A DNA stretch of 64,000 bases from Rebecca billardiae RCC1528 (GCA_965240325.2 OZ251222.1:620001-684000), one strand, 5' to 3'. Counted from the stretch's first letter, positions 9,116-23,900 are shown. A program made the numbers and translations. Notes: generated by a model from the sequence alone, not told the origin.

Positions 9116-9778
9116 TCAGCCGCTGCGCAGCAGGCCCCACACCATCGTTGCGAGCGCGGGCAGCGGCAGCAAGAGCTCGTAGGCGCCGCGGGCAGGGTTG
9201 GCCCACGCGAAGAAGCCCGCCTCAGCAAGCGCGGGCAGCGGCAGCACCGCCCAGTCCAAGGCCGGGCTGGGGCAGAGGCCGAAGTAGCAAGCGAGCGCGA
9301 GGGAGGGGAGGGGCAGCAGGTGGTCCTGCCGCTCGCCGTTGCCACGCACGTACCGCCCCGGGTCGCGCCCGCAGAGCCACTGGTACGCGGTGCGCGCATC
9401 GAGCAGGAGCGACAGCGAGCTGACTGCACCCGTGTACAGCACGAAACGCGCCATGTTCAGGTCGCCCTGCGCGGCGGGCGTGCCGAGCCAGTGGTACGCG
9501 AACGGGATCGCAACCAGGAACGGCAGGTGCATGATCGGCGCGGTGATCTTGGTCATGCGCCAGCGTGGGAGCAAGAAGAGCTGGCCCGCCACAACGAAAG
9601 AAAGAGCGCGCGCCGCAAAGATCACACTCGCAGGGGAGCGTAATCCGCGGGTGACGCCAAGGAAGCCCCCGACGATCAGCTGGGGGAATGGGAAGAGCGA
9701 CGCCCACACGGCGACCGGGCGTCGGAGCGTCCGCATGTCGCTGATAAACACGCTCAGCCCACGCAGGATGGCCGCCAT
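9116..9778 (-). CDS. Hypothetical multi-pass membrane protein (~220 aa)
   Basis: ATG at 9778 (MAAILRGLSVF...). Several hydrophobic helices, and three LLPLPxLA-like motifs in the C-terminus. Confidence 0.7.
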   Translation of the reverse strand: MAAILRGLSVFISDMRTLRRPVAVWASLFPFPQLIVGGFLGVTRGLRSPASVIFAARALSFVVAGQLFLLPRWRMTKITAPIMHLPFLVAIPFAYHWLGTPAAQGDLNMARFVLYTGAVSSLSLLLDARTAYQWLCGRDPGRYVRGNGERQDHLLPLPSLALACYFGLCPSPALDWAVLPLPALAEAGFFAWANPARGAYELLLPLPALATMVWGLLRSG

Positions 9779-10058
9779 GGGGACCGGACGCGTGCTTGAC
9801 ACTGCGCAGGGCGTGCGCAGGGCGCGGACCAAGGTACCGCGGCGCTTTTCAGAAGCGGCGGCGAAAACGCGGATTCCACAGCCCATCAGGCACAGCCGCA
9901 CTCGTTCACAAGGCCCGCACCAAACCCAAATTTCCCAAAGAGGCCTCCGCTTGATACGTCCGATTTGTGCCCAGTTGACCCGTCCACCTGCCGCCGCCGA
10001 ACCGCGCCGGAGCGGGATACCATCGTCGTCGTCGCAAGGGCGCGGTCCAACGCACATC

Positions 10059-13000
10059 ATGAGATGTGCTGCCCTCGTCATAGCGGCCTTGACTGCGCTC
10101 GCAGCGGCCCATGAGCGCGAGCTGTCCTCGTCAAAGCTGAGCGTCCGAGTCCTCGGTCAGTCCGGCAAGATGGTGTACGGCACCTCGGGTGGCTCGGACG
10201 ACGACAAGGTGCAGGTGACGATGTCGAGCATCACCGAGCGCGACTCGAACGGCGGCACTGTGGGCCAGTTCGGGCCAAACGACGGCAAGCACGCGCGCAC
10301 CACGTTTGCCAACACGGACTTCACGTTCGGCAGCGTGTACGCCACCAAAGTCTCCGGCGTGAATGCGAGCGCCATCGACTTTGAGGTCTCACTCGTCGAC
10401 GACGCGGCCGACCTGCGGATCACTGCTCTGATCTTCACGGAGGGCGGCACGATCGCCCCGACCCCGTCCGAGGTGTACAACGTGACCGAGGGCACGCTCA
10501 AGTTCAACGTCGAGGTGCGTGCAAGCTCGCGCGTGCCGCGCCGTGCCGCGCATTGCGCAGCGCCCAGGCTCACTGGCGCGCGGGCCTGCGCGTGCAGGTG
10601 CTGAACTGGCCGTTCTGCGCTGGCGAGAGCGGCAACCCGTGTCAGGGCCAGGTTGGCGAGTACCTCGACATCGGCATTGCGATCAAGTCGAAGGGCAACG
10701 AGAGCCTCAGCCTCACGCCGATCGAGGCGAACAAGTACTCGCTCGGTGAGGGCGCCGAGCTGATCGTGTCGGACGCTGCTCGGCTGGACGGCACGTGGAC
10801 GACGATGCCGTCTGGCTACCCGGAGCTGTCGCTGTCTGGCTCGTCCAAGTACGAGCTGATGCTGCGCTTCGACAGGTTCAGCTCGTCAGCGCTGTACGAC
10901 CCCGTCGTGCGGCAAGTGGGCACAGAGGACACGGCGCCGAGCCCGCCACCCCGCCCGCCGTCGCCACCACTCCTACCACCGCCGAGCCCGCCTCCCAGCG
11001 CGCCGCCGCCCCCGCCGTCGCCGAGCCCGCCTCCGAGCCCGCCGCCGCAGCCGCCGCCGCCGCCGCCGCCGCCGAGCCAGTCGCCGAGCCCGCCACCGCA
11101 GACTCCGCCGAGCGCGCCGCCGAGCCCGCCTCCCAGCCCGCCGCCGCAGCCGCCGAGCCCGCCTCCCAGCCCGCCGCAGCCGCAGCAGTCACCGAGCCCG
11201 CCTCCGAGCCCACCGCCGCCTCCTGTGCCCCCTCCAACCCCACCACCACCGCCGCCTCTCGGTGACGAGCGTGACCTGTCTTCCTCCGACTACACGGTGC
11301 GCATCCTGGGCCGCTCCGGCAAGATGGTGTACGGCACCTCGGGTGGCTCGGACGACGACAAGGTGCAGGTGACGATGTCGAGCATCACCGAGCGCGACTC
11401 GAACGGCGGCACTGTGGGCCAGTTCGGGCCAAACGTCGGCAAGCACGCGCGCACCACGTTTGCCAACACGGACTTCACGTTCGGCAGCGTGTACGCCACC
11501 AAAGTCTCCGGCGTGAATGCGAGCGCCATCGACTTCGAGGTCTCACTCGTCGACGACGCGGCCGACCTGCGGATCACTGCTCTGATCTTCACGGAGGGCG
11601 GCACGATCGCCCCGACCCCGTCCGAGGTGTACAACGTGACCGAGGGCACGCTCAAGTTCAACGTCGAGGTGCGTGCAAGCTCGCGCGTGCCGCGCCGTGC
11701 CGCGCATTGCGCAGCGCCCAGGCTCACTGGCGCGCGCGCACCCTGGCCTGCGCGTGCAGGTGCTGAACTGGCCGTTCTGCGCTGGCGAGAGCGGCAACCC
11801 GTGTCAGGGCCAGGTTGGCGAGTACCTCGACATCGGCATTGCGATCAAGTCGAAGGGCAACGAGAGCCTCAGCCTCACGCCGATCGAGGCGAACAAGTAC
11901 TCGCTCGGTGAGGGCGCCGAGCTGATCGTGTCGGACGCTGCTCGGCTGGACGGCACGTGGACGACGATGCCGTCTGGCTACCCGGAGCTGTCGCTGTCTG
12001 GCTCGTCCAAGTACGAGCTGATGCTGCGCTTCGACAGGTTCAGCTCGTCAGCGCTGTACGACCCCGTCGTGCGGCAAGTGGGCACAGAGGACACGGCGCC
12101 GAGCCCGCCACCCCGCCCGCCGTCGCCACCACTCCTACCACCGCCGAGCCCGCCTCCCAGCGCGCCGCCGCCCCCGCCGTCGCCGAGCCCGCCTCCGAGC
12201 CCGCCGCCGCAGCCGCCGCCGCCGCCGCCGCCGCGCCAGTCGCCGAGCCCGCCACCGCAGACTCCGCCGAGCGCGCCGCCGAGCCCGCCTCCCAGCCCGC
12301 CGCCGCAGCCGCCGAGCCCGCCTCCCAGCCCGCCGCAGCCGCAGCAGTCACCGAGCCCGCCTCCGAGCCCACCGCCGCCTCCTGTGCCCCCTCCAACCCC
12401 ACCACCACCGCCGCCTCTCGGTGACGAGCGTGACCTGTCTTCCTCCGACTACACGGTGCGCATCCTGGGCCGCTCCGGCAAGATGGTGTACGGCACCTCG
12501 GGTGGCTCGGACGACGACAAGGTGCAGGTGACGATGTCGAGCATCACCGAGCGCGACTCGAACGGCGGCACTGTGGGCCAGTTCGGGCCAAACGACGGCA
12601 AGCACGCGCGCACCACGTTTGCCAACACGGACTTCACGTTCGGCAGCGTGTACGCCACCAAAGTCTCCGGCGTGAATGCGAGCGCCATCGACTTTGAGGT
12701 CTCACTCGTCAACGACGCGGCTGACCTGCGGATCACTGCTCTGATCTTCACGGAGGGCGGCACGATCGCCCCGACCCCGTCCGAGGTGTACAACGTGACC
12801 GAGGGCACGCTCAAGTTCAACGTCGAGGTGCGTGCAAGCTCGCGCGTGCCGCGCCGTGCCGCGCATTGCGCAGCGCCCAGGCTCACTGGCGCGCGGGCCT
12901 GCGCGTGCAGGTGCTGAACTGGCCGTTCTGCGCTGGCGAGAGCGGCAACCCGTGTCAGGGCCAGGTTGGCGAGTACCTCGACATCGGCATTGCGATCAAG

Positions 13001-16000
13001 TCGAAGGGCAACGAGAGCCTCAGCCTCACGCCGATCGAGGCGAACAAGTACTCGCTCGGTGAGGGCGCCGAGCTGATCGTGTCGGACGCTGCTCGGCTGG
13101 ACGGCACGTGGACGACGATGCCGTCTGGCTACCCGGAGCTGTCGCTGTCTGGCTCATCGAAGTACGAGCTGATGCTGCGCTTCGACAGGTTCAGCTCGTC
13201 AGCGCTGTACGACCCCGTCGTGCGGCAAGTGGGCACAGAGGACACGGCGCCGAGCCCGCCACCCCGCCCGCCGTCGCCACCACTCCTACCACCGCCGAGC
13301 CCGCCTCCCAGCGCGCCGCCGCCCCCGCCGTCGCCGAGCCCGCCTCCGAGCCCGCCGCCGCAGCCGCCGCCGCCGCCGCCGCCGCCGCGCCAGTCGCCGA
13401 GCCCGCCACCGCAGACTCCGCCGAGCGCGCCGCCGAGCCCGCCTCCCAGCCCGCCGCCGCAGCCGCCGAGCCCGCCTCCCAGCCCGCCGCAGCCGCCGCA
13501 GTCACCGAGCCCGCCTCCGAGCCCACCGCCGCCTCCTGTGCCCCCTCCAACCCCACCACCACCGCCGCCTCTCGGTGACGAGCGTGACCTGTCTTCCTCC
13601 GACTACACGGTGCGCATCCTGGGCCGCTCCGGCAAGTTGGTGTACGGCACCTCGGGTGGCTCGGACGACGACAAGGTGCAGGTGACGATGTCGAGCATCA
13701 CCGAGCGCGACTCGAACGGCGGCACTGTGGGCCAGTTCGGGCCGAACGACGGCAAGCACGCGCGCACCACGTTTGCCAACACGGACTTCACGTTCGGCAG
13801 CGTGTATGCCACCAAAGTCTCCGGCGTGAATGCGAGCGCCATCGACTTCGAGGTCTCACTCGTCAACGACGCGGCTGACCTGCGGATCACTGCTCTGATC
13901 TTCACGGAGGGCGGCACGATCGCCCCGACCCCGTCCGAGGTGTACAACGTGACCGAGGGCACGCTCAAGTTCAACGTCGAGGTGCGTGCAAGCTCGCGCG
14001 TGCCGCGCCGTGCCGCGCTTTGCGCAGCGCCCAGGCTCACTGGCGCGCGCGCACCCTGGCCTGCGCGTGCAGGTGCTGAACTGGCCGTTCTGCGCTGGCG
14101 AGAGCGGCAACCCGTGTCAGGGCCAGGTTGGCGAGTACCTCGACATCGGCATTGCGATCAAGTCGAAGGGCAACGAGAGCCTCAGCCTCACGCCGATCGA
14201 GGCGAACAAGTACTCGCTCGGTGAGGGCGCCGAGCTGATCGTGTCGGACGCTGCTCGGCTGGACGGCACGTGGACGACGATGCCGTCTGGCTACCCGGAG
14301 CTGTCGCTGTCTGGCTCATCGAAGTACGAGCTGATGCTGCGCTTCGACAGGTTCAGCTCGTCAGCGCTGTACGACCCCGTCGTGCGGCAAGTGGGCACAG
14401 AGGACACGGCGCCGAGCCCGCCACCCCGCCCGCCGTCGCCACCACTCCTACCACCACCGAGCCCGCCTCCCAGCGCGCCGCCGCCCCCGCCGTCGCCGAG
14501 CCCGCCTCCCAGCCCACCGCTGCTTCCGCCGCCGCCGCCGCCGCCGAGCCCGCCTCCGAGCCTGCCGCCGCTGCGCCCGCCGCCGTGGAGCCCGCCTCCC
14601 AGCCTGCCGCCACCGCAGCCGCCGAGCGCACTGCCGAGCCCACTTCCGCCCCTGCTGCCTCCGAGCCCGCCGCCGAGCCCACCGCCGCCCCCGCTCCCTC
14701 AGAGCCCGCCACCACGGCCGCCGCCGCCATCGCCGTCGAGCCCGCCTTCAAGCCCACCGCCGCCCCCGCCCCCTCAGAGCCCGCCAACAAGGCCGCCGCC
14801 GCCGCCGCCGTGGAGCCCGCCTCCAAGCCCACCGCCGCCCCCGCTCCCGCCAAGCCCGCCGCCGAGCCCGCCGCCGCCATTGCCACCGAGCCCGTCTCCG
14901 AGCACACCGCCGCCCCCACCCACGCCGAGCCCGCCGCCGAGCCCGCCGCCGCCATTGCCGCCGAGCCCGCCTCCAAGCCCACCGCCGACCCCACCTACGC
15001 CGAGCCCGCCGCCGAGCCCGCCGCCACCATCGCCGTCGAGCCCGCCTCCGAGCCCACCGCCGCCCCCGCCCCCTCAGAGCCCGCCACCAAGGCCGCCGCC
15101 GCCACCGCCGTGGAGCCCGCCTCCAAGCCCACCGCCGCCCCCGCTCCTGCCAAGCCCGCCGCCGAGCCCGCCGCCGCCATTGCCACCGAGCCCGTCTCCG
15201 AGCACACCGCCGCCCCCACCCACGCCGAGCCCGCCGCCGAGCCCGCCGCCGCCATTGCCGCCGAGCCCGCCTCCAAGCCCACCGCCGACCCCACCTACGC
15301 CGAGCCCGCCGCCGAGCCCGCCGCCACCATCGCCGTCGAGCCCGCCTCCGAGCCCACCGCCGCCCCCGCCCCCTCAGAGCCCGCCACCAAGGCCGCCGCC
15401 GCCACCGCCGTGGAGCCCGCCTCCAAGCCCACCGCCGCCCCCGCTCCCTCCAAGCCCGCCGCCGAGCCCGCCGCCGCCATTGCCACCGAGCCCGTCTCCG
15501 AGCACACCGCCGCCCCCACCCACGCCGAGCCCGCCGCCGAGCCCGCCGCCGCCATTGCCGCCGAGCCCGCCTCCAAGCCCACCGCCGACCCCACCTACGC
15601 CGAGCCCGCCGCCGAGCCCGCCGCCACCATCGCCGTCGAGCCCGCCTCCGAGCCCACCGCCGCCCCCGCCCCCTCAGAGCCCGCCACCAAGGCCGCCGCC
15701 GCCACCGCCGTGGAGCCCGCCTCCAAGCCCACCGCCGCCCCCGCTCCCACCAAGCCCGCCGCCGAGCCCGCCGCCGCCATTGCCACCGAGCCCGTCTCCG
15801 AGCACACCGCCGCCCCCACCCACGCCGAGCCCGCCGCCGAGCCCGCCGCCGCCATTGCCGCCGAGCCCGCCTCCAAGCCCACCGCCGACCCCACCTACGC
15901 CGAGCCCGCCGCCGAGCCCGCCGCCACCATCGCCGTCGAGCCCGCCTCCGAGCCCACCGCCGCCCCCGCCCCCTCAGAGCCCGCCACCAAGGCCGCCGCC

Positions 16001-18457
16001 GCCACCGCCGTGGAGCCCGCCTCCAAGCCCACCGCCGCCCCCGCTCCCACCAAGCCCGCCGCCGAGCCCGCCGCCGCCATTGCCACCGAGCCCGTCTCCG
16101 AGCACACCGCCGCCCCCACCCACGCCGAGCCCGCCGCCGAGCCCGCCGCCGCCATTGCCGCCGAGCCCGCCTCCAAGCCCACCGCCGACCCCACCTACGC
16201 CGAGCCCGCTGCCGAGCCCGCCGCCACCATCGCCGTCGAGCCCGCCTCCGAGCCCACCACCGCCCCCGCCACCTCAGAGCCCGCCACCAAGGCCGCCGCC
16301 GCCGCCGCCGTGGAGCCCGCCTCCAAGCCCAACGCTGCCCCCGCTCCCGCCAAGCCCGCCGCCGAGCCCGCCGCCGCCATTGCCTCTCAGTGACGAGCGT
16401 GACCTGTCTTCCGTCGACTACACGGTGCGCATCCTGGGCCGCTCCGGCAAGATGGTGTACGGCACCTCGGGTGGCTCGGACGACGACAAGGTGCAGGTGA
16501 CAATGTCGAGCATCACCGAGTGCAACTGCGCTGGCGACACTGTGGGCCACTTCGGGCCGAACGACGGCAAGCACGCGCGCACCACGTTTGCCAACACGGA
16601 CTTCACGTTCGGCAGCGTGTACGCCACCAACGTCTCGGGCGTGGCCGCGAGCGCCATCGACTTCGAGGTCTCACTCGTCAACGACGCAGCTGACCTGCGG
16701 ATCACTGCTCTGATCTTCACGGAGGGCGGCACGATCTCCCCGACCCCGTCCGAGGTGTACAACGTGACCGAGGGCACGCTCAAGTTCAACGTCGAGGTGC
16801 GTGCAAGCTCGCGCGTGCCGCGCCGTGCCGCGCTTTGCGCAGCGCCCAGGCTCACTGGCGCGCGCGCACCCTGGCCTGCGCGTGCAGGTGCTGAACTGGC
16901 CGTTCTGCGCTGGCGAGAGCGGCAACCCGTGTCAGGGCCAGGTTGGCGAGTACCTCGACATCGGCATTGTGATCAAGTCGAAGGGCAACGAGAGCCTCAG
17001 CCTCACGCCGATCGAGGCGAACAAGTACTCGCTCGGTGAGGGCGCCGAGCTGATCGTGTCGGACGCTGCTCGGCTGGACGGGACGTGGACGACGATGCCG
17101 TCTGGCTACCCGGAGCTGTCGCTGTCTGGCTCATCGAAGTACGAGCTGATGCTGCGCTTCGACAGGTTCAGCTCGTCCGCGCTCTACGACCCGATCGTGC
17201 AGGAAAACGTGGAGGAGGTTGGGGCACCACTGGTCCTGCCGCCGAGCCCGCCGCCCCTGTCGCCCTCGCCAAGCCCGCCGCCGAGCCCGCCATCCCCACC
17301 TCCACCGCCAAGCCCGCCGCCGCCGCCATCGCCCACCATTCAGCAGCTGACTCCCCCAACACCTGTGGACTCGTCTGAGCCGGTCAACACCGTCCAGATC
17401 CTCGGTCAGTCAGGCAAGATGGTGTACGGCACCTCGGGTGGCTCGGACGACGACAAGGTGCAGGTGACGATGTCGAGCATCACCGAGCGCGACTCGAACG
17501 GCGGCACTGTGGGCCAGTTCGGGCCGAACGCCGGCAAGCACTCGCGCACCACGTTTGCCAACACGGACTTCACGTTCAGTTTCATGTACGCCACGAACGT
17601 GTCTGGCGTTGCGGCGAATGCCATCGACTTCACGGTCAAGCTGGTCAATGACGCGGCCGACCTGCGAATCACTGCGCTGATCTTCACGGAGAGCGGCACG
17701 ATCACGCCCACTCCCTCTGAGTCGTACACCGTGACAAGCGGCACGCTCAAGTTCAACATCGAGGTGCGTTTGCACCTGCACGTGCGATTAGGACTGGTGT
17801 GGTGCGCAGAGCTGAGCCCTGCCACGCGCCCTGCGCCTGCGCTCGCGCCCGCAGGTCCTCAACTGGCCGTTTTGCGCTGGCGAGAGCGGCAACCCGTGTC
17901 AGGGCGAGGTCGGCGACGTGTTGGACGTCGGCATTGAGGTGACGTCCAAGGCTGGCGAGACGCTCGATCTGACGCCGATCGCGAACAACACTTACTCGCT
18001 GGGCAACGGCGCGGCGATGGTGGTGTCGAACGTGGCGAAGCTGGATGGTGCCTGGGCGACGATGCCGTCTGGCTATCCCCAGCTTGCCCTCTCCGGCTCC
18101 ACCAAGTACGAGCTGATGCTGCGCTTCGACAAGTTCAGCTCGTCAGCGTGGTACGACCCGATCGTGCAGGATGACGGCACGACTACCTCCGGCTCATCTA
18201 GTGGCACTTCGAGTGACAGTGGGAGCAGCGCCGATGCCGACGATGACGATGACGACGATGGCGGCAACAGTGGCATTGTCGGGGGCCTCAACAGTGAGCT
18301 CGGAGCCGGTGGCGTGGCCGGCATCGTCGTGATGGGAGTCATGGTGTTCTGCTGCTGCTTGTGTGCGGTTGGCATGCTGCTGGCCCGGCAGGAACGAAAA
18401 CGACGACGGCTTGACGACAGTGCCATTGGTGAACCACGCCTTTACCAAGAGCACTGA
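10059..18457 (+). CDS. Large type-I membrane protein: six SAARP/CARP4-like domains with Ser-Pro (extensin-like) linkers, 7 exons, ~2,622 aa
   Basis: Signal peptide MRCAALVIAALTALAAA. Phase-0 introns lie at 10515-10597, 11669-11759, 12828-12910, 13982-14072, 16797-16887 and 17764-17854, all at KFN(V/I)E|VLNW. Spliced length is 7,869 nt, divisible by 3. The C-terminus has an acidic patch, a TM helix (GVAGIVVMGVMVFCCCLCAVGMLLA) and a basic stop-transfer segment RQERKRRR. Confidence 0.9.
14690..16390 (+). repeat. 300-bp coding tandem repeat (~5.5 copies) encoding a 100-aa Pro/Ser unit
   Basis: Sequence lines at 14761, 15061, 15361, 15661, 15961 and 16261 are near-identical. Confidence 0.95.
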
Positions 18458-18550: not shown

Positions 18551-18647
<97 letters not shown>

Positions 18648-18672
18648 ACTAGAGCTATTTAATCTCTCTGCT

Positions 18673-18714
<42 letters not shown>

Positions 18715-18745
18715 CTCTCTCTCTCTCTCTGACTCTCTCTCTCTC
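18551..18745. repeat. (AT)n microsatellite (18551-18644) followed by interrupted (CT)n
   Basis: Direct observation. Confidence 0.97.
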
Positions 18746-19148
18746 TGCTGCTGCATGCTAGTCGATCATAATGCCGCGGCGCGCCATCCGATCATCTGCA
18801 TGCATCATCAGTATCTAGCAGCAGCTGCCAGCGCTATACGGTTGCCGTCATCTCTGCGCTGCTGAAGCCTGATGATGACTAAGTACTGATGATATGTATA
18901 CTCTTGCATTGTCCCAGCAGCAGAATGCAGATATCATACGTACGCATCGGACCGCCGGACTGCCTGCCGGCTGCCCGCGAGCCGTGACCCGCCGCTCGGA
19001 GACGCTGCAATCGTAGCCAACGAGTACTGATGCATGAACGCCGCACTCAGCGCAGCGCGCAGTCTCGCCAGCACCGCGATGCTCACCTCGGTAGCTCATC
19101 AGAGCATCGCGTCGATCCGATGCGCTGAGCAGCACGCACTGACTGGCC

Positions 19149-20672
19149 TCACCAGTCGAGCTCGAAGGGCATGGGCGAGAGCTGCTCTGCCGTCCCGCGC
19201 TGCACCGCCAGGTGGCGCTCGGTGCCGCCGATGCCCCAGAGGAAGACGTGGCGCCCGGCGCGCGCCACGCCGCCGCCGTCCGCGCCGGCCGCGCCGCTGG
19301 GGCCGGGAGGCTGCTCGTCTGCGTCCACGTCCACGTTGGCGGCGGCGCCGGGCTGCGCGCGCGTCTTGGCAGCGCTCAGGTTGGCGCCCGCGGCGATCTC
19401 CTCGACGCACGCCCCCGCCAGCGCGCGCACGCGCGCGGGCGCGCTCCGATGGCGCTTGTCCCCGTGGCCGAGCGCGCCGATGAAGCCGTGGCCGAACGAG
19501 TACACGCAGCCGTCCTGCCCGAGGGCGAGCGAGTGGGCGGCGCCCGCGGCGAGCGCGCGCACGCGCGAGAGGGAGGCGACGCGGGTGGGCACGGTGCGCG
19601 CGGCGTCGTCGGCGTGGCCGAGCCGGCCGTCGCGCCCGTCGCCGAACGAGAACACGCAGCCGCCCGCCGCGAGCACGAGCGAGTGCGCGCCGCCCGCCGA
19701 GATGGCGAGCGCTCGGCCTGCGGGCGGGACGGGCGCATGCGCGCCGAGCGGCCGCCCGAACGTGGGCAGCGCGCGCGGCTCGAGGTGGTTGTGCTCGGCG
19801 GGGCCATGGCCGAGCTTGCCGTGCTGCCCGTGCCCCCACGAGTACACCGCCCCGCTCTCGCACCGCGCGAGCGAGTGGTGCTCCCCCGCCGCCACCTCCA
19901 CCACCCGGACTGCGCGCAGGCCGCGCACGCGCTGCGGCGTGCCGCGGTGCTCCGTGTCGCCCAGGCCGAGCCGGCCCCACCAGCCGGCGCCGCAGGCGAA
20001 GACGGCGCCCTCGTCGGTGAGCAGGAGGGTGTGCGAGCCGCCCGCCGCCGCGCCCACCACCCGATGCCCGCCCAGTGCCTCGACGCGCGCCGGCGTCGTG
20101 CGCGGCTTGCAGTCGCCGTGGCCGAGCCGACCGAATGAGCCGCAGCCAAAGGCGAAGGCGGCGCCGCCGGCTGCGACGCAGAGGTTGTGCCGCGCGCCGG
20201 CGGCGATGGCGAGGACGCGCACGCTCGCGAGCGCGGGGATCGGCGTGGGCACGCGCGCCGTGAGCCAGCCCGCGCCGCCCGCCCCGTGGCCGAGCACGCC
20301 CGGCGCGTGGAACTGCGTGCCCTCCTCCTCCGAGTCCCCGCGCACGCGCACGCGGCCGAGGCTGTCGATCATGAGGAAGTGGCGCGAGCCGGCGGCGAGG
20401 CGGTGGCGCGTGAAGAGCGCCTCGCGGCGCTCCTCCCACAGCAGCTGCTGCGTCCACCCGCACGCGGGCGCCTCGACGTGCGCCGCGCGCGCGCGCGCCG
20501 CGGCCAGCTCCCTTGCGCGCGCGCGCCCGGCGGGCCGCTTCCAGCACGCGAGCTCGGCGATCGCGCGGAAGGTCCGGCTGACCTGATCGACGCGGCCCAC
20601 GTCATCCGCCGCCGGCAGCCGCGCGACGATGCGCGCGAGGACGTCGTTCGGCAGCTCGTCGAGCAGCGGCAT
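19149..20672 (-). CDS. F-box-like + RCC1-repeat protein (~507 aa)
   Basis: ATG at 20672 opens an F-box-like segment, MPLLDELPNDVLARIVARLP...VSRTFR. Six to seven RCC1 repeats follow (AAGxxHxL...GxVYSWGxGxxGxLGHG). Confidence 0.85.
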   Translation of the reverse strand: MPLLDELPNDVLARIVARLPAADDVGRVDQVSRTFRAIAELACWKRPAGRARARELAAARARAAHVEAPACGWTQQLLWEERREALFTRHRLAAGSRHFLMIDSLGRVRVRGDSEEEGTQFHAPGVLGHGAGGAGWLTARVPTPIPALASVRVLAIAAGARHNLCVAAGGAAFAFGCGSFGRLGHGDCKPRTTPARVEALGGHRVVGAAAGGSHTLLLTDEGAVFACGAGWWGRLGLGDTEHRGTPQRVRGLRAVRVVEVAAGEHHSLARCESGAVYSWGHGQHGKLGHGPAEHNHLEPRALPTFGRPLGAHAPVPPAGRALAISAGGAHSLVLAAGGCVFSFGDGRDGRLGHADDAARTVPTRVASLSRVRALAAGAAHSLALGQDGCVYSFGHGFIGALGHGDKRHRSAPARVRALAGACVEEIAAGANLSAAKTRAQPGAAANVDVDADEQPPGPSGAAGADGGGVARAGRHVFLWGIGGTERHLAVQRGTAEQLSPMPFELDW

Positions 20673-20941
20673 GCGCAGCGACGCGCGCCTCGGCCGGACG
20701 CGACGGTTCGTCGCGAGATTCGCATCGGGGTGGCAAGCTTTCGACGACAGTAGTGGCAGCTTGTGAAGCTCCGACCGGGTCCGCAGCGGCGGTTCATCAG
20801 CTCTCCGCCAGCTGGGGACTTCCCAGTCCCGGACGGACTCGGGCACAGCCGTGGCAGGGCGGCGCATGGCCATGTGGCATGATGCAGCAGCTACAGCACA
20901 TGATGCTGATCCGACGCCGACGGCGCCGACGCAGCCTGGCC

Positions 20942-23900
20942 TCACGGCGCCGTCAGCAGCGCAGCGACGGCCGACGTCTCCGCCTCGGCGAGCGCCCGGA
21001 GCGCCGCCGCCGCGTGCGCCGCGCTCGCAGCCGCTCCATCGGCGCCTCCACCGCCCTCCGCGCCGCCGGCTGGCGCGCGCCGCGGCGCAGAGCGCGCGCG
21101 CGCCGGCGCCGCGTGCGGGTGTGCTGGGAACGACGGCGCCGGCGGCTCGGCCACGCCCACGCCGCCCGCGCTCAAGCCCGACGCCGCGAGCGCAGACCAC
21201 ACCGCATCCGGGTGCGCGCGGCCGAGGCCGATCAAGACCGCGCGCGCGCGCTCCGCCAGCGCCGCGCCGTCCGCGCGCGCGCACGCGCTGGGCTGCAGCG
21301 TGGCAAGCAGCGCGCGCGCGGCGCCGTCGGCATGCGGGGCGATCGCGTCGCCTGCGTCGAGCTCGATGAGCGCGTCGAGGCCGTCGAGCGCGGCGCGGCG
21401 CAGCGCGAGCGCGTGCGCGCGCGAGAGCGCGACGCCGTCGCTCGGCGCCGCGCCGTGCGCTCGGCGCACGCCGCCGCCGCCGTCGTCGTCGTCGCCGTCT
21501 GCGCGCGCGCGCAGCGCGGCGCGCAGCGCTGGCCACACCTCCTGAGACGCGCGAGCGCGGAGGTACTCCGCCGGTGGCGCGCGGAGCCACTCGGAGAGCA
21601 CGCCCGCCGCGGCGATGCGCGCGCGCGGGTGCGCGCCCCGTAGCAGCTGATACCTGAGCGCAGGCCACAGCGCGTGCACGGCGGGCAGCAGGCGGCGCGG
21701 CCGGTGGCCGAGGCCGCGCGCGGCGTGCGCCGCGGCGCGCAGCGCGCAGCATGCTTCGCGCACGTCGGCTGAGCCGAGCCAATGGGCGCACCGACTCAGC
21801 GTGCCGAGCAGCATGGCGTCGCGCGAGCCCGGCGGCAGCGGCGTGTCCACGTCCTCCTCCTCCTCCTCCTCCACCTCGCCATCGCCCTCCCTCCGTGGCG
21901 GCTGCGGCCGCGGCCGCACGCCGGCCGCCGCTGCCGTCGGCTCGCGCGCGCCCGCGCCGTCGGCGCCGCCTGCCGTGGCGCCGCGCGCCGCGCCACCGCT
22001 CGCGGGAGACCCAGGCCGCGCGGGCTGGCCGGGCGCGAGCGGCGCCGGGCAGAGCTCGTCGTCGCTCGAGTCCTCGGCCGAGCTCTCGCCGCCCTCCGCC
22101 CCGAGCGCCCCGCCCTCGCCCCGTCCCATGTCCATTCGGAGGTCGGCCGCGGCGCGCGCACTCGCCACGGCCGCGGCCAGCGCCTCGCGCGCCGCCGCCT
22201 CGAGCGCGCTCGCGCCCGCGGCCGGGGCGGGCAGCGTGCGCGCGGCGGGCGTGCCGCGCGTCGCGCCGCCCTCCGGCTCCGTCATCGCGAGCGCGGCGGC
22301 GGCCGCGAGCATGACGCGCAGCAGCGGCAGCGCGCGCACCGTCGCGCGCGCGCCGCCCCGCGCGCCGGGCGTCGAAGCATCGACCGGCGCCTCCAAAGCG
22401 CGCTCGGAGAGGGTTGCTGCGGTCGCCGCGCCGCCGTCGGGCAGCGGCGGCGCGCAGTGCGCGTCGTCGAGCGCGCGCGCGGTCCACTCCAGCACGTCCG
22501 CGAGCAGCGGCAGCGCGGCGCGCGGCGCGTACGCCAGCAGTGCGCACAGCACCTGAGGAGCGCGCGGGTGCGCGTGCGGCCGCCGTATCTGGGCGACGAG
22601 ATTGTCCACGAGATAGTCGAGATTGCACTGGAGCAGGGAGGCCACGCCGCGCACGCCCGCGGCGCCAGCGCGCGCGGGGCCGGGGGCGCAGGGCGCCAAC
22701 CCGGCCGGAGCGGGTGCGGGTGCGGGTGCGCAGCCGGGCGCGCCCGCGGGTGCGGCGGCGGCGGCGCCGCCGCCCACGCCGCCGGGCGGCTTGGCGCGCG
22801 CGAGCTGCATCTGCTGCAGAGCCGCATGCGCCGCGCACGCCACCGCCTCCCGCGGGTCCCCCAGCGCCTCCGCCAGCGGGTAGAGGGCGGCCATCAGCGT
22901 CTCGTCGCCGAGCGCGGGGCCGAGGGCGCGCGCGCACTCGGCCACGCACGCGAGGCAGCGCGCGTGCAGCGCGCACTGCGTAGCGGCGCGCGCGCCCGGC
23001 GGCGCTAAGGCTCTGAGTAGGCCAGTGGATGTGGCTGACAGCGCGCCGCCGTCCGCGCCGCCCGCCAGCGCAGCCGGCGGCGGCGCGCCCCGCTCATCCT
23101 CGCCGCCGCTCCCGCTATCCCGGCGCAGCCCGGCCGACCCGCCGCCATCCTCGTCGTCAGCAGCCGCCGCCCAGAGCGTTGGCTCTAGCAGTGCGGTGCA
23201 CAGCGCCGTGCACAGCCGCGCGCCCTCTGCGCGCACGCGCGCGCGCGCCGAGGCGGGCGCGAGGCGCGCGTCTGACCACACGCCGTCGTCCCAGCCGAGG
23301 CCGGCGGCGTCTTCGTCCACGCCGCGTGCGCCGCGTGCGCCGCCCTCGGCGCCGCCGCGTGCCGCGCCGCCATCGCCGCCGCCGCCGCCATCGCCGCCGC
23401 CGCCGCCATCGTCGCCGCCGCCGAGCGCGCCGCCTCCGGCGCTCCGGCCCTCGAACGCGAGGGCGGGCGCGTCGCCCGCGCGCACGAGCGCCTGCAGGCA
23501 CAGCAGCGCACCGAGCCGCCTCGACGCCGGCCCCTCCGCCGCGCCCAGCTCCTCGAGCCACGCGGCCGCCGCCAGCGTCCGGCCCGCGGCCGCGCCCACC
23601 TCCGCGCCGAGGGCGTGCAGCGCGGCGCGCGCGCCCTCGGAGCGGACGTGGCGGAGCGGCGGCGCGCGGAGCGCGGCGCGCGCCGCCGCGGCGTCGAGCT
23701 GCGCGGGCGTGCGCGCGAGCCCGCCGCCGTACCGCCCGCCCGCGCCCTCCTCCGCCTCGCCGCCCACGCCCACGCCGTGCCGGGGCAGCAGCGGCTCGAG
23801 CGCGGCGGCGAGCGCGCGCGCGATTCGCGGCAGCTGCGCGCGCGCGACCGGCCGCGCGCGCGCGCCGAGCAGGCGCAGGTGCGTGGCGAGGGCGAGCGCG

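Follow-up and report, generated by a model that had tools for sequence, protein, structure and literature searches.

Six SAARP-core domains on serine/proline linkers in the predicted product of a seven-exon algal gene, a putative membrane-anchored cell-coat protein

The closest described counterparts of the gene analysed here include skeletal proteins of scleractinian corals, SAARP1, SAARP2, SAARP3, CARP4 and CARP5 (SAARP, skeletal aspartic acid-rich protein), of which CARP4/SAARP1 is reportedly the most abundant coral skeletal matrix protein (~24%; PMC8382919). They share a signal peptide and a core with the motif order (L)G.SGK, KHS..F, LF.E.G, GT.KFN, NW.FC, GEYLD, IK.K, MP.G(Y/F)P, F(R).PKF and (Y/I)DP, and SAARP2 and SAARP3 have a single C-terminal transmembrane (TM) helix (PMC4890752, PMC3748352). 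Each carries one such domain with two long poly-Asp/Asn inserts, contains ~20% Asp (PMC3748352) and is occluded in aragonite; mineral interaction has been attributed to the acidic inserts, the conserved core being treated separately (PMC4890752, 10.1101/594242). Takeuchi et al. (2016) placed the conserved region in cnidarians and bivalves only (PMC4890752), and in the literature we found neither a SAARP core outside Metazoa (PMC4890752, 10.1101/594242 and PMC8382919 place it in cnidarians and bivalves only) nor any work linking SAARP, CARP4 or CARP5 with a haptophyte or Emiliania. Here we describe a 64,000-nt stretch of Rebecca billardiae RCC1528 (GCA_965240325.2 OZ251222.1:620001-684000; hereafter the window), in which positions 10059-18457 of the plus strand hold what we read, with a probability of about 0.65, as one seven-exon gene for a type I membrane protein that carries six SAARP-core domains on Ser/Pro linkers and would form a fibre of the cell coat.

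The predicted gene consists of seven exons and six GT-AG introns, and splicing out the introns leaves a 7,869-nt open reading frame (ORF) of 2,622 residues whose sole stop is the terminal codon. Exon 1 (10059-10514) holds the start codon, the signal peptide and the N-terminal half of domain 1, and each of the five internal exons starts with the C-terminal half of one domain, runs through a Ser/Pro linker and ends with the N-terminal half of the next. Thus exon 2 (10598-11668, 1071 nt) joins domains 1 and 2 through 122 linker residues, exon 3 (11760-12827, 1068 nt) domains 2 and 3 through 121, exon 4 (12911-13981, 1071 nt) domains 3 and 4 through 122, exon 5 (14073-16796, 2724 nt) domains 4 and 5 through a rod of 673, and exon 6 (16888-17763, 876 nt) domains 5 and 6 through 57. 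Exon 7 (17855-18457) contributes the C-terminal half of domain 6, a Ser/Gly/Asp-rich stalk, the TM helix, a 23-residue basic cytoplasmic tail and the stop codon. Introns 1 to 6 (10515-10597, 11669-11759, 12828-12910, 13982-14072, 16797-16887 and 17764-17854) measure 83, 91, 83, 91, 91 and 91 nt, and none of these lengths is divisible by three, so read-through would shift the frame. The six donors (AAGTTCAAC/A-TCGAG, then GTGCGT) and the six acceptors (..GCAG, then GTSCTSAACTGG) lie at the same position in each repeat, and their contexts recur every 1154, 1159, 1154, 2815 and 967 bp. Intron 1, which reads GTGCGT...GCAG and is in phase 0, falls where the homologues are contiguous: across the junction the window protein has KFNVE joined to VLNWPFC and the Prymnesium parvum relative has KFNLELSNWPFC, colinear and of equal length, and another relative that is colinear here, an Exanthemachrysis gayraliae protein of the P0075 cluster, is derived from a transcript (MMETSP1464). 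The predicted splice junctions are validated by these contiguous homologues.

All five internal exons are divisible by three and have phase-0 borders at the same domain residue, so that skipping any one of them would rebuild an intact domain in frame; exon skipping or unequal crossing-over is therefore predicted to yield isoforms or alleles that stay in frame but have fewer domains and shorter rods. The arrangement also bears on whether the repeats could be several separate tandem genes and not parts of one mRNA, a reading that would agree with single-domain genes being the commonest form in the family. We regard it as highly improbable, since none of domains 2-6 has its own Met or signal peptide, each Pro-rich linker keeps the frame, five times running, the TM helix and the stop codon occur in the last unit only, and the layout domain-linker-domain-linker-TM is encoded by a single ORF in one relative (P0005).

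When a profile of the relatives was run on the spliced protein, it returned six full-length domains (E 1e-98 to 1e-101, profile positions 2-231/232), each of 235 residues and each with the Cys pair (W.FC...C) and the SGK, KHS, FRF and YDP motifs that characterize the domain family. Counted with their introns, domain 1 occupies 10128-10915 (residues 24-258; hmmsearch E 3e-101, also detected by tblastn), domain 2 11282-12077 (residues 381-615), domain 3 12441-13228 (737-971), domain 4 13595-14390 (1094-1328), domain 5 16410-17205 (2002-2236) and domain 6 17377-18172 (2294-2528), and tblastn of the whole window detected the twelve half-domains of this gene and no others. A preliminary description of the locus had proposed six spliced repeats, Ser-Pro linkers, a signal peptide and one TM helix, all of which the 2,622-residue gene model and its six profile matches bear out, and the motifs it listed for each repeat are all present in the order it gave.

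The same description had called the repeats SAARP/CARP4-like, and we examined this by comparing them with the coral skeletal proteins motif by motif and by transitive homology. BLASTP of spliced domain 1 against SAARP-named proteins matched a Saccostrea 'SAARP1-like' protein (33% identity, E 6e-40) and the Actinia tenebrosa 'SAARP2-like' protein XP_031565543.1 (P0103; 30% identity over 243 residues, E 7.5e-33). In Adi-SAARP1 (PMC4890752 supplement) the motifs ..GGKIMIV, HSVESF, LYLFREDG, GTVKFNIKISNWDFC, GEYLDVNIKFKSK, MGGDSEMLL, AMPFGFP, KFRVPKF and IDPSV follow in the order seen in the window. Adi-SAARP1 has two poly-Asp/Asn inserts, one in the loop that follows the SGK strand and one after IK.K; at these positions the window domains have SDDDK and nothing, respectively. 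Because of the E-values to anthozoan and bivalve 'SAARP-like' proteins, the names these carry at NCBI and the match to the Adi-SAARP1 motifs, sequence comparison supports true homology between the window repeat and the conserved, non-acidic core of the coral SAARP/CARP4-type proteins. The acid-rich character implied by the earlier name did not hold: the Asp content is 6.4% in the domains and 4.4% in the whole protein, and since the algal domains have no poly-Asp inserts, the predicted protein is a member of a wider SAARP-core family and not an acid-rich SAARP. In contrast to the scleractinian proteins, it combines six uninterrupted domains with Ser/Pro rods and comes from a probably non-calcifying alga.

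A calcium or mineral role like that of coral SAARPs, such as surface Ca2+ binding through acidic domains (pI ~4.5) and an Asp run, might be argued from the domain pI of 4.4-4.5, from the run DADDDDDDD beside the membrane and from the SDDDK loop at the place of the first coral acidic insert. We consider such a role very unlikely because of the low Asp content, 6.4% against ~20% in SAARPs (PMC3748352) and with the poly-Asp inserts lacking, and because the closest relatives come from non-calcifying haptophytes (Prymnesium, Exanthemachrysis); moreover, the literature ties mineral interaction to the acidic inserts (PMC4890752, 10.1101/594242).

The wider family was defined with the domain alone, as a protein query from exon 6 gave 3 matches dominated by Pro-rich words. 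The domain-restricted query found haptophyte-type proteins, among them Prymnesium parvum AB1Y20_013047, and a two-domain Mytilus galloprovincialis protein (E 3e-60), and an exhaustive profile search of cluster representatives returned 1,070 at E<=1e-3, 634 at <=1e-10 and 281 at <=1e-30, so that the family comprises at least 1,070 clusters; taxon names were obtained for only a few of these representatives. Named members come from haptophytes, a cryptophyte (P0159, Rhodomonas salina), bivalves (such as P0147 from Pinctada), a priapulid, a sea anemone and one giant-virus-like contig. A second profile search gave proteins from oysters, Mya arenaria and Priapulus caudatus whose NCBI names are 'skeletal aspartic acid-rich protein 1-like', the corresponding '2-like' or 'acidic skeletal organic matrix protein-like'. 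By BLASTP, spliced domain 1 is closest to the Exanthemachrysis (43% identity, E 4e-62) and Prymnesium (43%, E 1e-60) proteins, followed by Mytilus (39%, E 2e-46), and it also matches Rhodomonas (32%, E 7e-32). Pfam lacks a model for this large family, as neither domain half nor any of 56 family members scanned matched one for the SAARP-core domain, and sequence searches of the PDB with single sequences and with the family profile gave nothing meaningful.

The haptophyte relatives (Prymnesium P0016, which is AB1Y20_013047; the environmental P0001, P0002, P0004 and P0005; and the Exanthemachrysis protein), all unannotated or hypothetical, have the same domain, 40-47% identical to those of the window, with a Ser/Pro stalk, a TM helix and a short basic tail; stalk and helix were seen in P0001, P0002, P0005 and P0016. 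They differ in having one or two domains instead of six and in lacking a 673-residue rod, although P0004 and P0005 carry two domains with a Pro-rich linker of ~100 residues between them. The non-acidic SAARP-like proteins of anemones, bivalves and priapulids (Actinia XP_031565543.1, Mytilus galloprovincialis LOC143059307, Saccostrea, Ostrea, Mya, Priapulus) share an insert-free, secreted domain that is 30-39% identical to those of the window, but are proteins of ~290-580 residues with one or two domains, short non-Pro linkers and a hydrophobic C-terminus, as seen in the bivalve relatives. The preliminary description had held that SAARP/CARP proteins have a single such domain, which applies to corals and not elsewhere: the Mytilus, Saccostrea and Potamilus proteins have two in tandem, and some other relatives three. 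Its suggestion that the six-domain architecture is undescribed agrees with our search, where the 150 best family representatives had three domains at most; 21 related metagenome loci had one domain each, both searches being limited by the shortness of contigs and by gene prediction that ignores splicing. Its guess of a non-calcifying haptophyte host agrees with the relatives nearest to the gene, a pavlovophyte transcript and then Prymnesium, and with the base composition, the GC content being 71.0% for the window and a reported 73.25% for Diacronema lutheri (PMC8379373); these points and the short, GC-rich introns would suit a pavlovophyte like D. lutheri.

Other modules are fused to the domain in some relatives, namely Hint (P0006, E 3e-22), PAN plus F5/8-type-C (P0028) and an M6 peptidase (P0161). 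In the haptophyte-type proteins P0006, P0014 and P0021 a short Pro-rich linker connects the SAARP core to a downstream Hint/Hedgehog-type autoprocessing module (PF01079), a Hedgehog-like layout with the SAARP core in the position of the released cargo. The viral occurrence is a 266-residue protein in which a single SAARP-core domain lies between a signal peptide and a hydrophobic tail, encoded at L010:9938-10738 (+) on the IMG/VR entry IMGVR_UViG_3300020185_000019 (Ga0206131_10000146), a 97.5-kb contig of ~40% GC with dense intronless ORFs. Its neighbours encode a TFIIS zinc-ribbon (E 3e-16) and a Pox_A22 Holliday-junction resolvase (E 4e-14), so the contig looks like a giant virus (Nucleocytoviricota); it was the sole viral contig with the domain in the viral scans made.

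Within the gene, domains 1-4 are 97-99.6% identical in protein sequence, domain 5 is ~93% identical to these four, and domain 6 is ~78% identical to the others. In DNA, units 1 and 2 together match units 3 and 4 at 97.1% over 2,255 bp, the identity between units 2 and 3 being 98.5%, while introns 1 and 3 are identical (83 nt) and introns 2, 4 and 5 nearly so (91 nt); these identities and the pairing of the introns fit duplication of a two-unit block. Intron 6 is visibly diverged from introns 1-5, and its flanking exons share ~81% identity with the remaining units. A tree of 206 domains groups all six from the window in a single clade, with a pavlovophyte sequence (P0075/P0202) as sister and a Prymnesium-type haptophyte clade next, so the expansion is lineage-specific. 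As read from these comparisons, the array arose by recent tandem duplication within the lineage, including duplication of a two-unit block. The differences between units are mostly synonymous, with a ratio of nonsynonymous to synonymous substitution (dN/dS) of 0.11-0.56 among the domains and of 0.34-0.42 for domain 6 against the others. An origin of the units as a transposon or other repeat artefact was rejected on the coding constraint and the dN/dS below 1. Domain 5 reads ITECNCAGDTVGH against ITERDSNGGTVGQ in the other domains, a local cluster of changes that adds two Cys to one loop.

Such close similarity could also mean that the assembly is at fault, with the number of units or the length of a 300-bp array in exon 5 wrong, or that the locus is a silent, decaying gene that is not expressed: the units are 97-98.5% identical in DNA over 1.2-2.3 kb, and the 300-bp array has 97% matches. 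This appears quite unlikely given that the 7.9 kb of spliced sequence contain no frameshift or internal stop, that the differences between units are mostly synonymous, and that the units can be told apart, introns of 83 and 91 nt alternating and domains 5 and 6 having diverged, in a window free of N.

The predicted order of the 2,622-residue protein is a signal peptide, six domains on five Ser/Pro linkers, an Asp run, a TM helix and a basic tail, the signal peptide and the helix being assigned by inspection and hydropathy. The hydrophobic N-terminus (10059-10109, residues 1-17; MRCAALVIAALTALAAA, ending AAA before HE) resembles a signal peptide, and the sole other strongly hydrophobic stretch is the predicted TM helix at residues 2576-2599 (18314-18385), which is followed by RQERKRRR. 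The Asp run DADDDDDDD (18233-18259; Tandem Repeats Finder (TRF) match 18232-18260) adjoins the helix and lies outside the domains. From these features the protein is predicted to have a secreted type I membrane topology. The five linkers, of 57-673 residues and 1,095 residues in total, contain 47-69% Pro and 15-17.5% Ser, with 110 SPPP and 33 SPPPP motifs, and are devoid of Tyr, Lys and Cys. In exon 5, most of the long rod is encoded by a tandem array at 14656-16384 (+), 5.8 copies of a 300-bp (100-residue) unit with 97% matches (TRF), in which WSPPPSP recurs every 100 residues. All 17 N-x-S/T sequons lie in the domains and none in the linkers.

A membrane anchor of this kind might serve delivery only, the ectodomain being cut near the Asp/Ser-rich stalk and shed into an extracellular layer (scales, knob scales or mucilage) as a matrix or mucilage protein. 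Cleavage of TM-containing skeletal organic matrix proteins, including SAARP2, has been proposed by Ramos-Silva et al. (PMC3748352), a flexible Ser/Gly/Asp stalk adjoins the membrane in the window protein, and the Hint-fused relatives (P0006) represent family members released or re-anchored by processing. Cleavage here is putative, however, with no site or protease identified in the window, and we hold shedding to be unlikely, if less so than the alternatives discussed above; it is compatible with a membrane-anchored fibre and does not exclude it.

For the anchored cell-coat fibre that we prefer, the linkers would form extended, probably O-glycosylated polyproline-II rods of 38, 38, 38, 209 and 18 nm at full extension (calculated at 0.31 nm per residue), or ~340 nm in total if fully extended. 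The resulting fibrous glycoprotein would hold six binding modules away from the plasma membrane, where they may serve attachment of matrix or scales, adhesion or glycan binding. We propose this role because of the predicted type I topology, the confinement of the sequons to the domains, the Ser-(Pro)n linkers and the tethered extracellular contexts of the relatives. Comparable designs exist in other algae: volvocine pherophorins and sexual agglutinins carry surface-exposed globular modules on polyproline-II shafts of Ser-(Pro)3-5. By analogy, the window protein most probably works like such chimeric algal hydroxyproline-rich glycoproteins (HRGPs), although its globular domains are unrelated to theirs and its linkers lack the Tyr/Lys cross-link motifs. 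The long Pro-rich stretches of Ser-(Pro)3-5 that mark extensins and other HRGPs are present, and Tyr-based cross-link motifs (YXY, VYK) were found in none of the five linkers, so that with neither Tyr nor Lys extensin-type cross-linking is not expected. Among haptophytes, the Emiliania protein EhG42278.1, an extensin-like Ser-(Pro)3-4 protein, has been proposed to act in base-plate assembly (PMC10290126). A pherophorin domain (PF12499) was considered for the globular modules and rejected, as neither domain half had a Pfam match.

Several points weigh against the reading of the locus as one gene for a cell-coat fibre. The gene is known from genomic sequence alone, and its transcription and splicing are predictions. 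GC content is 68-79% across the region, and at the 71% of the window long ORFs arise by chance in several frames over Pro-rich DNA, so an open frame alone is weak evidence in the Pro-rich stretches; the copy number in a tandem array of 97-99% identity is prone to mis-assembly. As to function, the SAARP core has no established biochemical function in any organism, a predicted fold that resembles GLMP or glycosidase accessory domains does not establish one, proline hydroxylation and glycosylation of the linkers are predicted only, and the absence of Tyr and Lys from the linkers departs from the extensin pattern.

The fold of the domain was approached with AlphaFold models of two family members, a haptophyte domain (mba969f1372a7; pLDDT 85.8, pTM 0.82) and an oyster-type member (m093ad30b0af4; pLDDT 91.9, pTM 0.85), both of which are all-beta. 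The top structural match of both was the luminal domain of GLMP (glycosylated lysosomal membrane protein; PDB 8r8q chain B), with Z 13.1 and a root-mean-square deviation of 3.1 Å over 198 residues for the haptophyte model and Z 15.6, 3.2 Å, 221 residues and 13% identity for the oyster-type model. The next tier, ~3 Z units lower (Z 9-12), consisted of galactose-mutarotase-like supersandwiches from glycoside hydrolases, phosphorylases and polysaccharide lyases. The modelled fold is thus a beta-supersandwich closest to the GLMP luminal domain. GLMP itself has been described as a beta-sandwich resembling a domain of the cellodextrin phosphorylase 5NZ7 (PMC11252000), which is also among the structural matches of the SAARP-core models, and the two-sheet beta-sandwich that a 2026 preprint (10.64898/2026.03.24.713908) predicts for the core of CARP4/SAARP1 is consistent with the models here. 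A shape search of the ESM Atlas returned archaeal hypothetical proteins (template-modelling score 0.69-0.73) and GH65/F5-8C proteins, which inform at the fold level only, and the feature search of the same resource was uninformative (scores <=0.80).

GLMP (NCU-G1; 8r8q_B/6nyq) shares with the window protein a type I topology in which a glycosylated beta-sandwich is followed by a single TM helix and a short tail, but is lysosomal, acts as accessory subunit of the transporter MFSD1 and has 9-13% identity. The family profile found no GLMP chain in the PDB at E<=10, the 25 Pfam families listed for the 56 scanned members do not include NCU-G1, and the literature we consulted on either protein makes no link between the two. 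The likeness of the modelled SAARP core to GLMP could be remote homology or convergence. Glycans as the ligand are weakly suggested by the modelled fold family.

Tentatively, we suggest that the SAARP core is an ancient, GLMP-like extracellular beta-sandwich module that did not originate in Metazoa, and that in this pavlovophyte-like alga an array of cassette exons could tune domain number and rod length in frame, through exon skipping or unequal recombination. If so, haptophytes, cryptophytes, animals and one giant virus or more would have the module in common, and the binding activity of the algal fibre would reveal its role before mineral use. In our main reading, the SAARP-core domain would be a generic extracellular binding module, to which corals later added the poly-Asp inserts. 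Together with its relatives, the gene places the core in unicellular algae that do not calcify as well, and always in an extracellular setting tethered to the membrane, which supports the inserts and not the fold as the innovation specific to calcification, and cultured haptophytes offer easier experimental systems for identifying what the core binds. The link to the GLMP fold and the cassette-exon architecture are further testable hypotheses. In terms of novelty, the predicted protein is an expanded, chimeric member of an existing, poorly described family, which it extends to protists, and not a new type of system.

Around the gene, two long pure microsatellites, (AT)47 and (TC)40, lie at 18551-18746, ~100 bp 3' of the stop codon; they form an AT-rich island amid 65-80% GC and may mark the 3' untranslated region or a terminator region. 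Further downstream, an ORF on the minus strand (19149-22976) encodes an F-box (F-box-like, E 9e-6) and RCC1-like repeat protein (RCC1, E 1.5e-62), whose long Arg/Ala-rich N-terminal part is probably not all coding. On the upstream side, a 321-residue antisense ORF (9116-10081, minus strand) extends over the gene's first 23 nt. Towards its C-terminus it resembles a multi-pass membrane protein, with no Pfam match, and it may represent either a neighbouring gene with divergent transcription or an ORF that is open by chance in DNA of high GC content.

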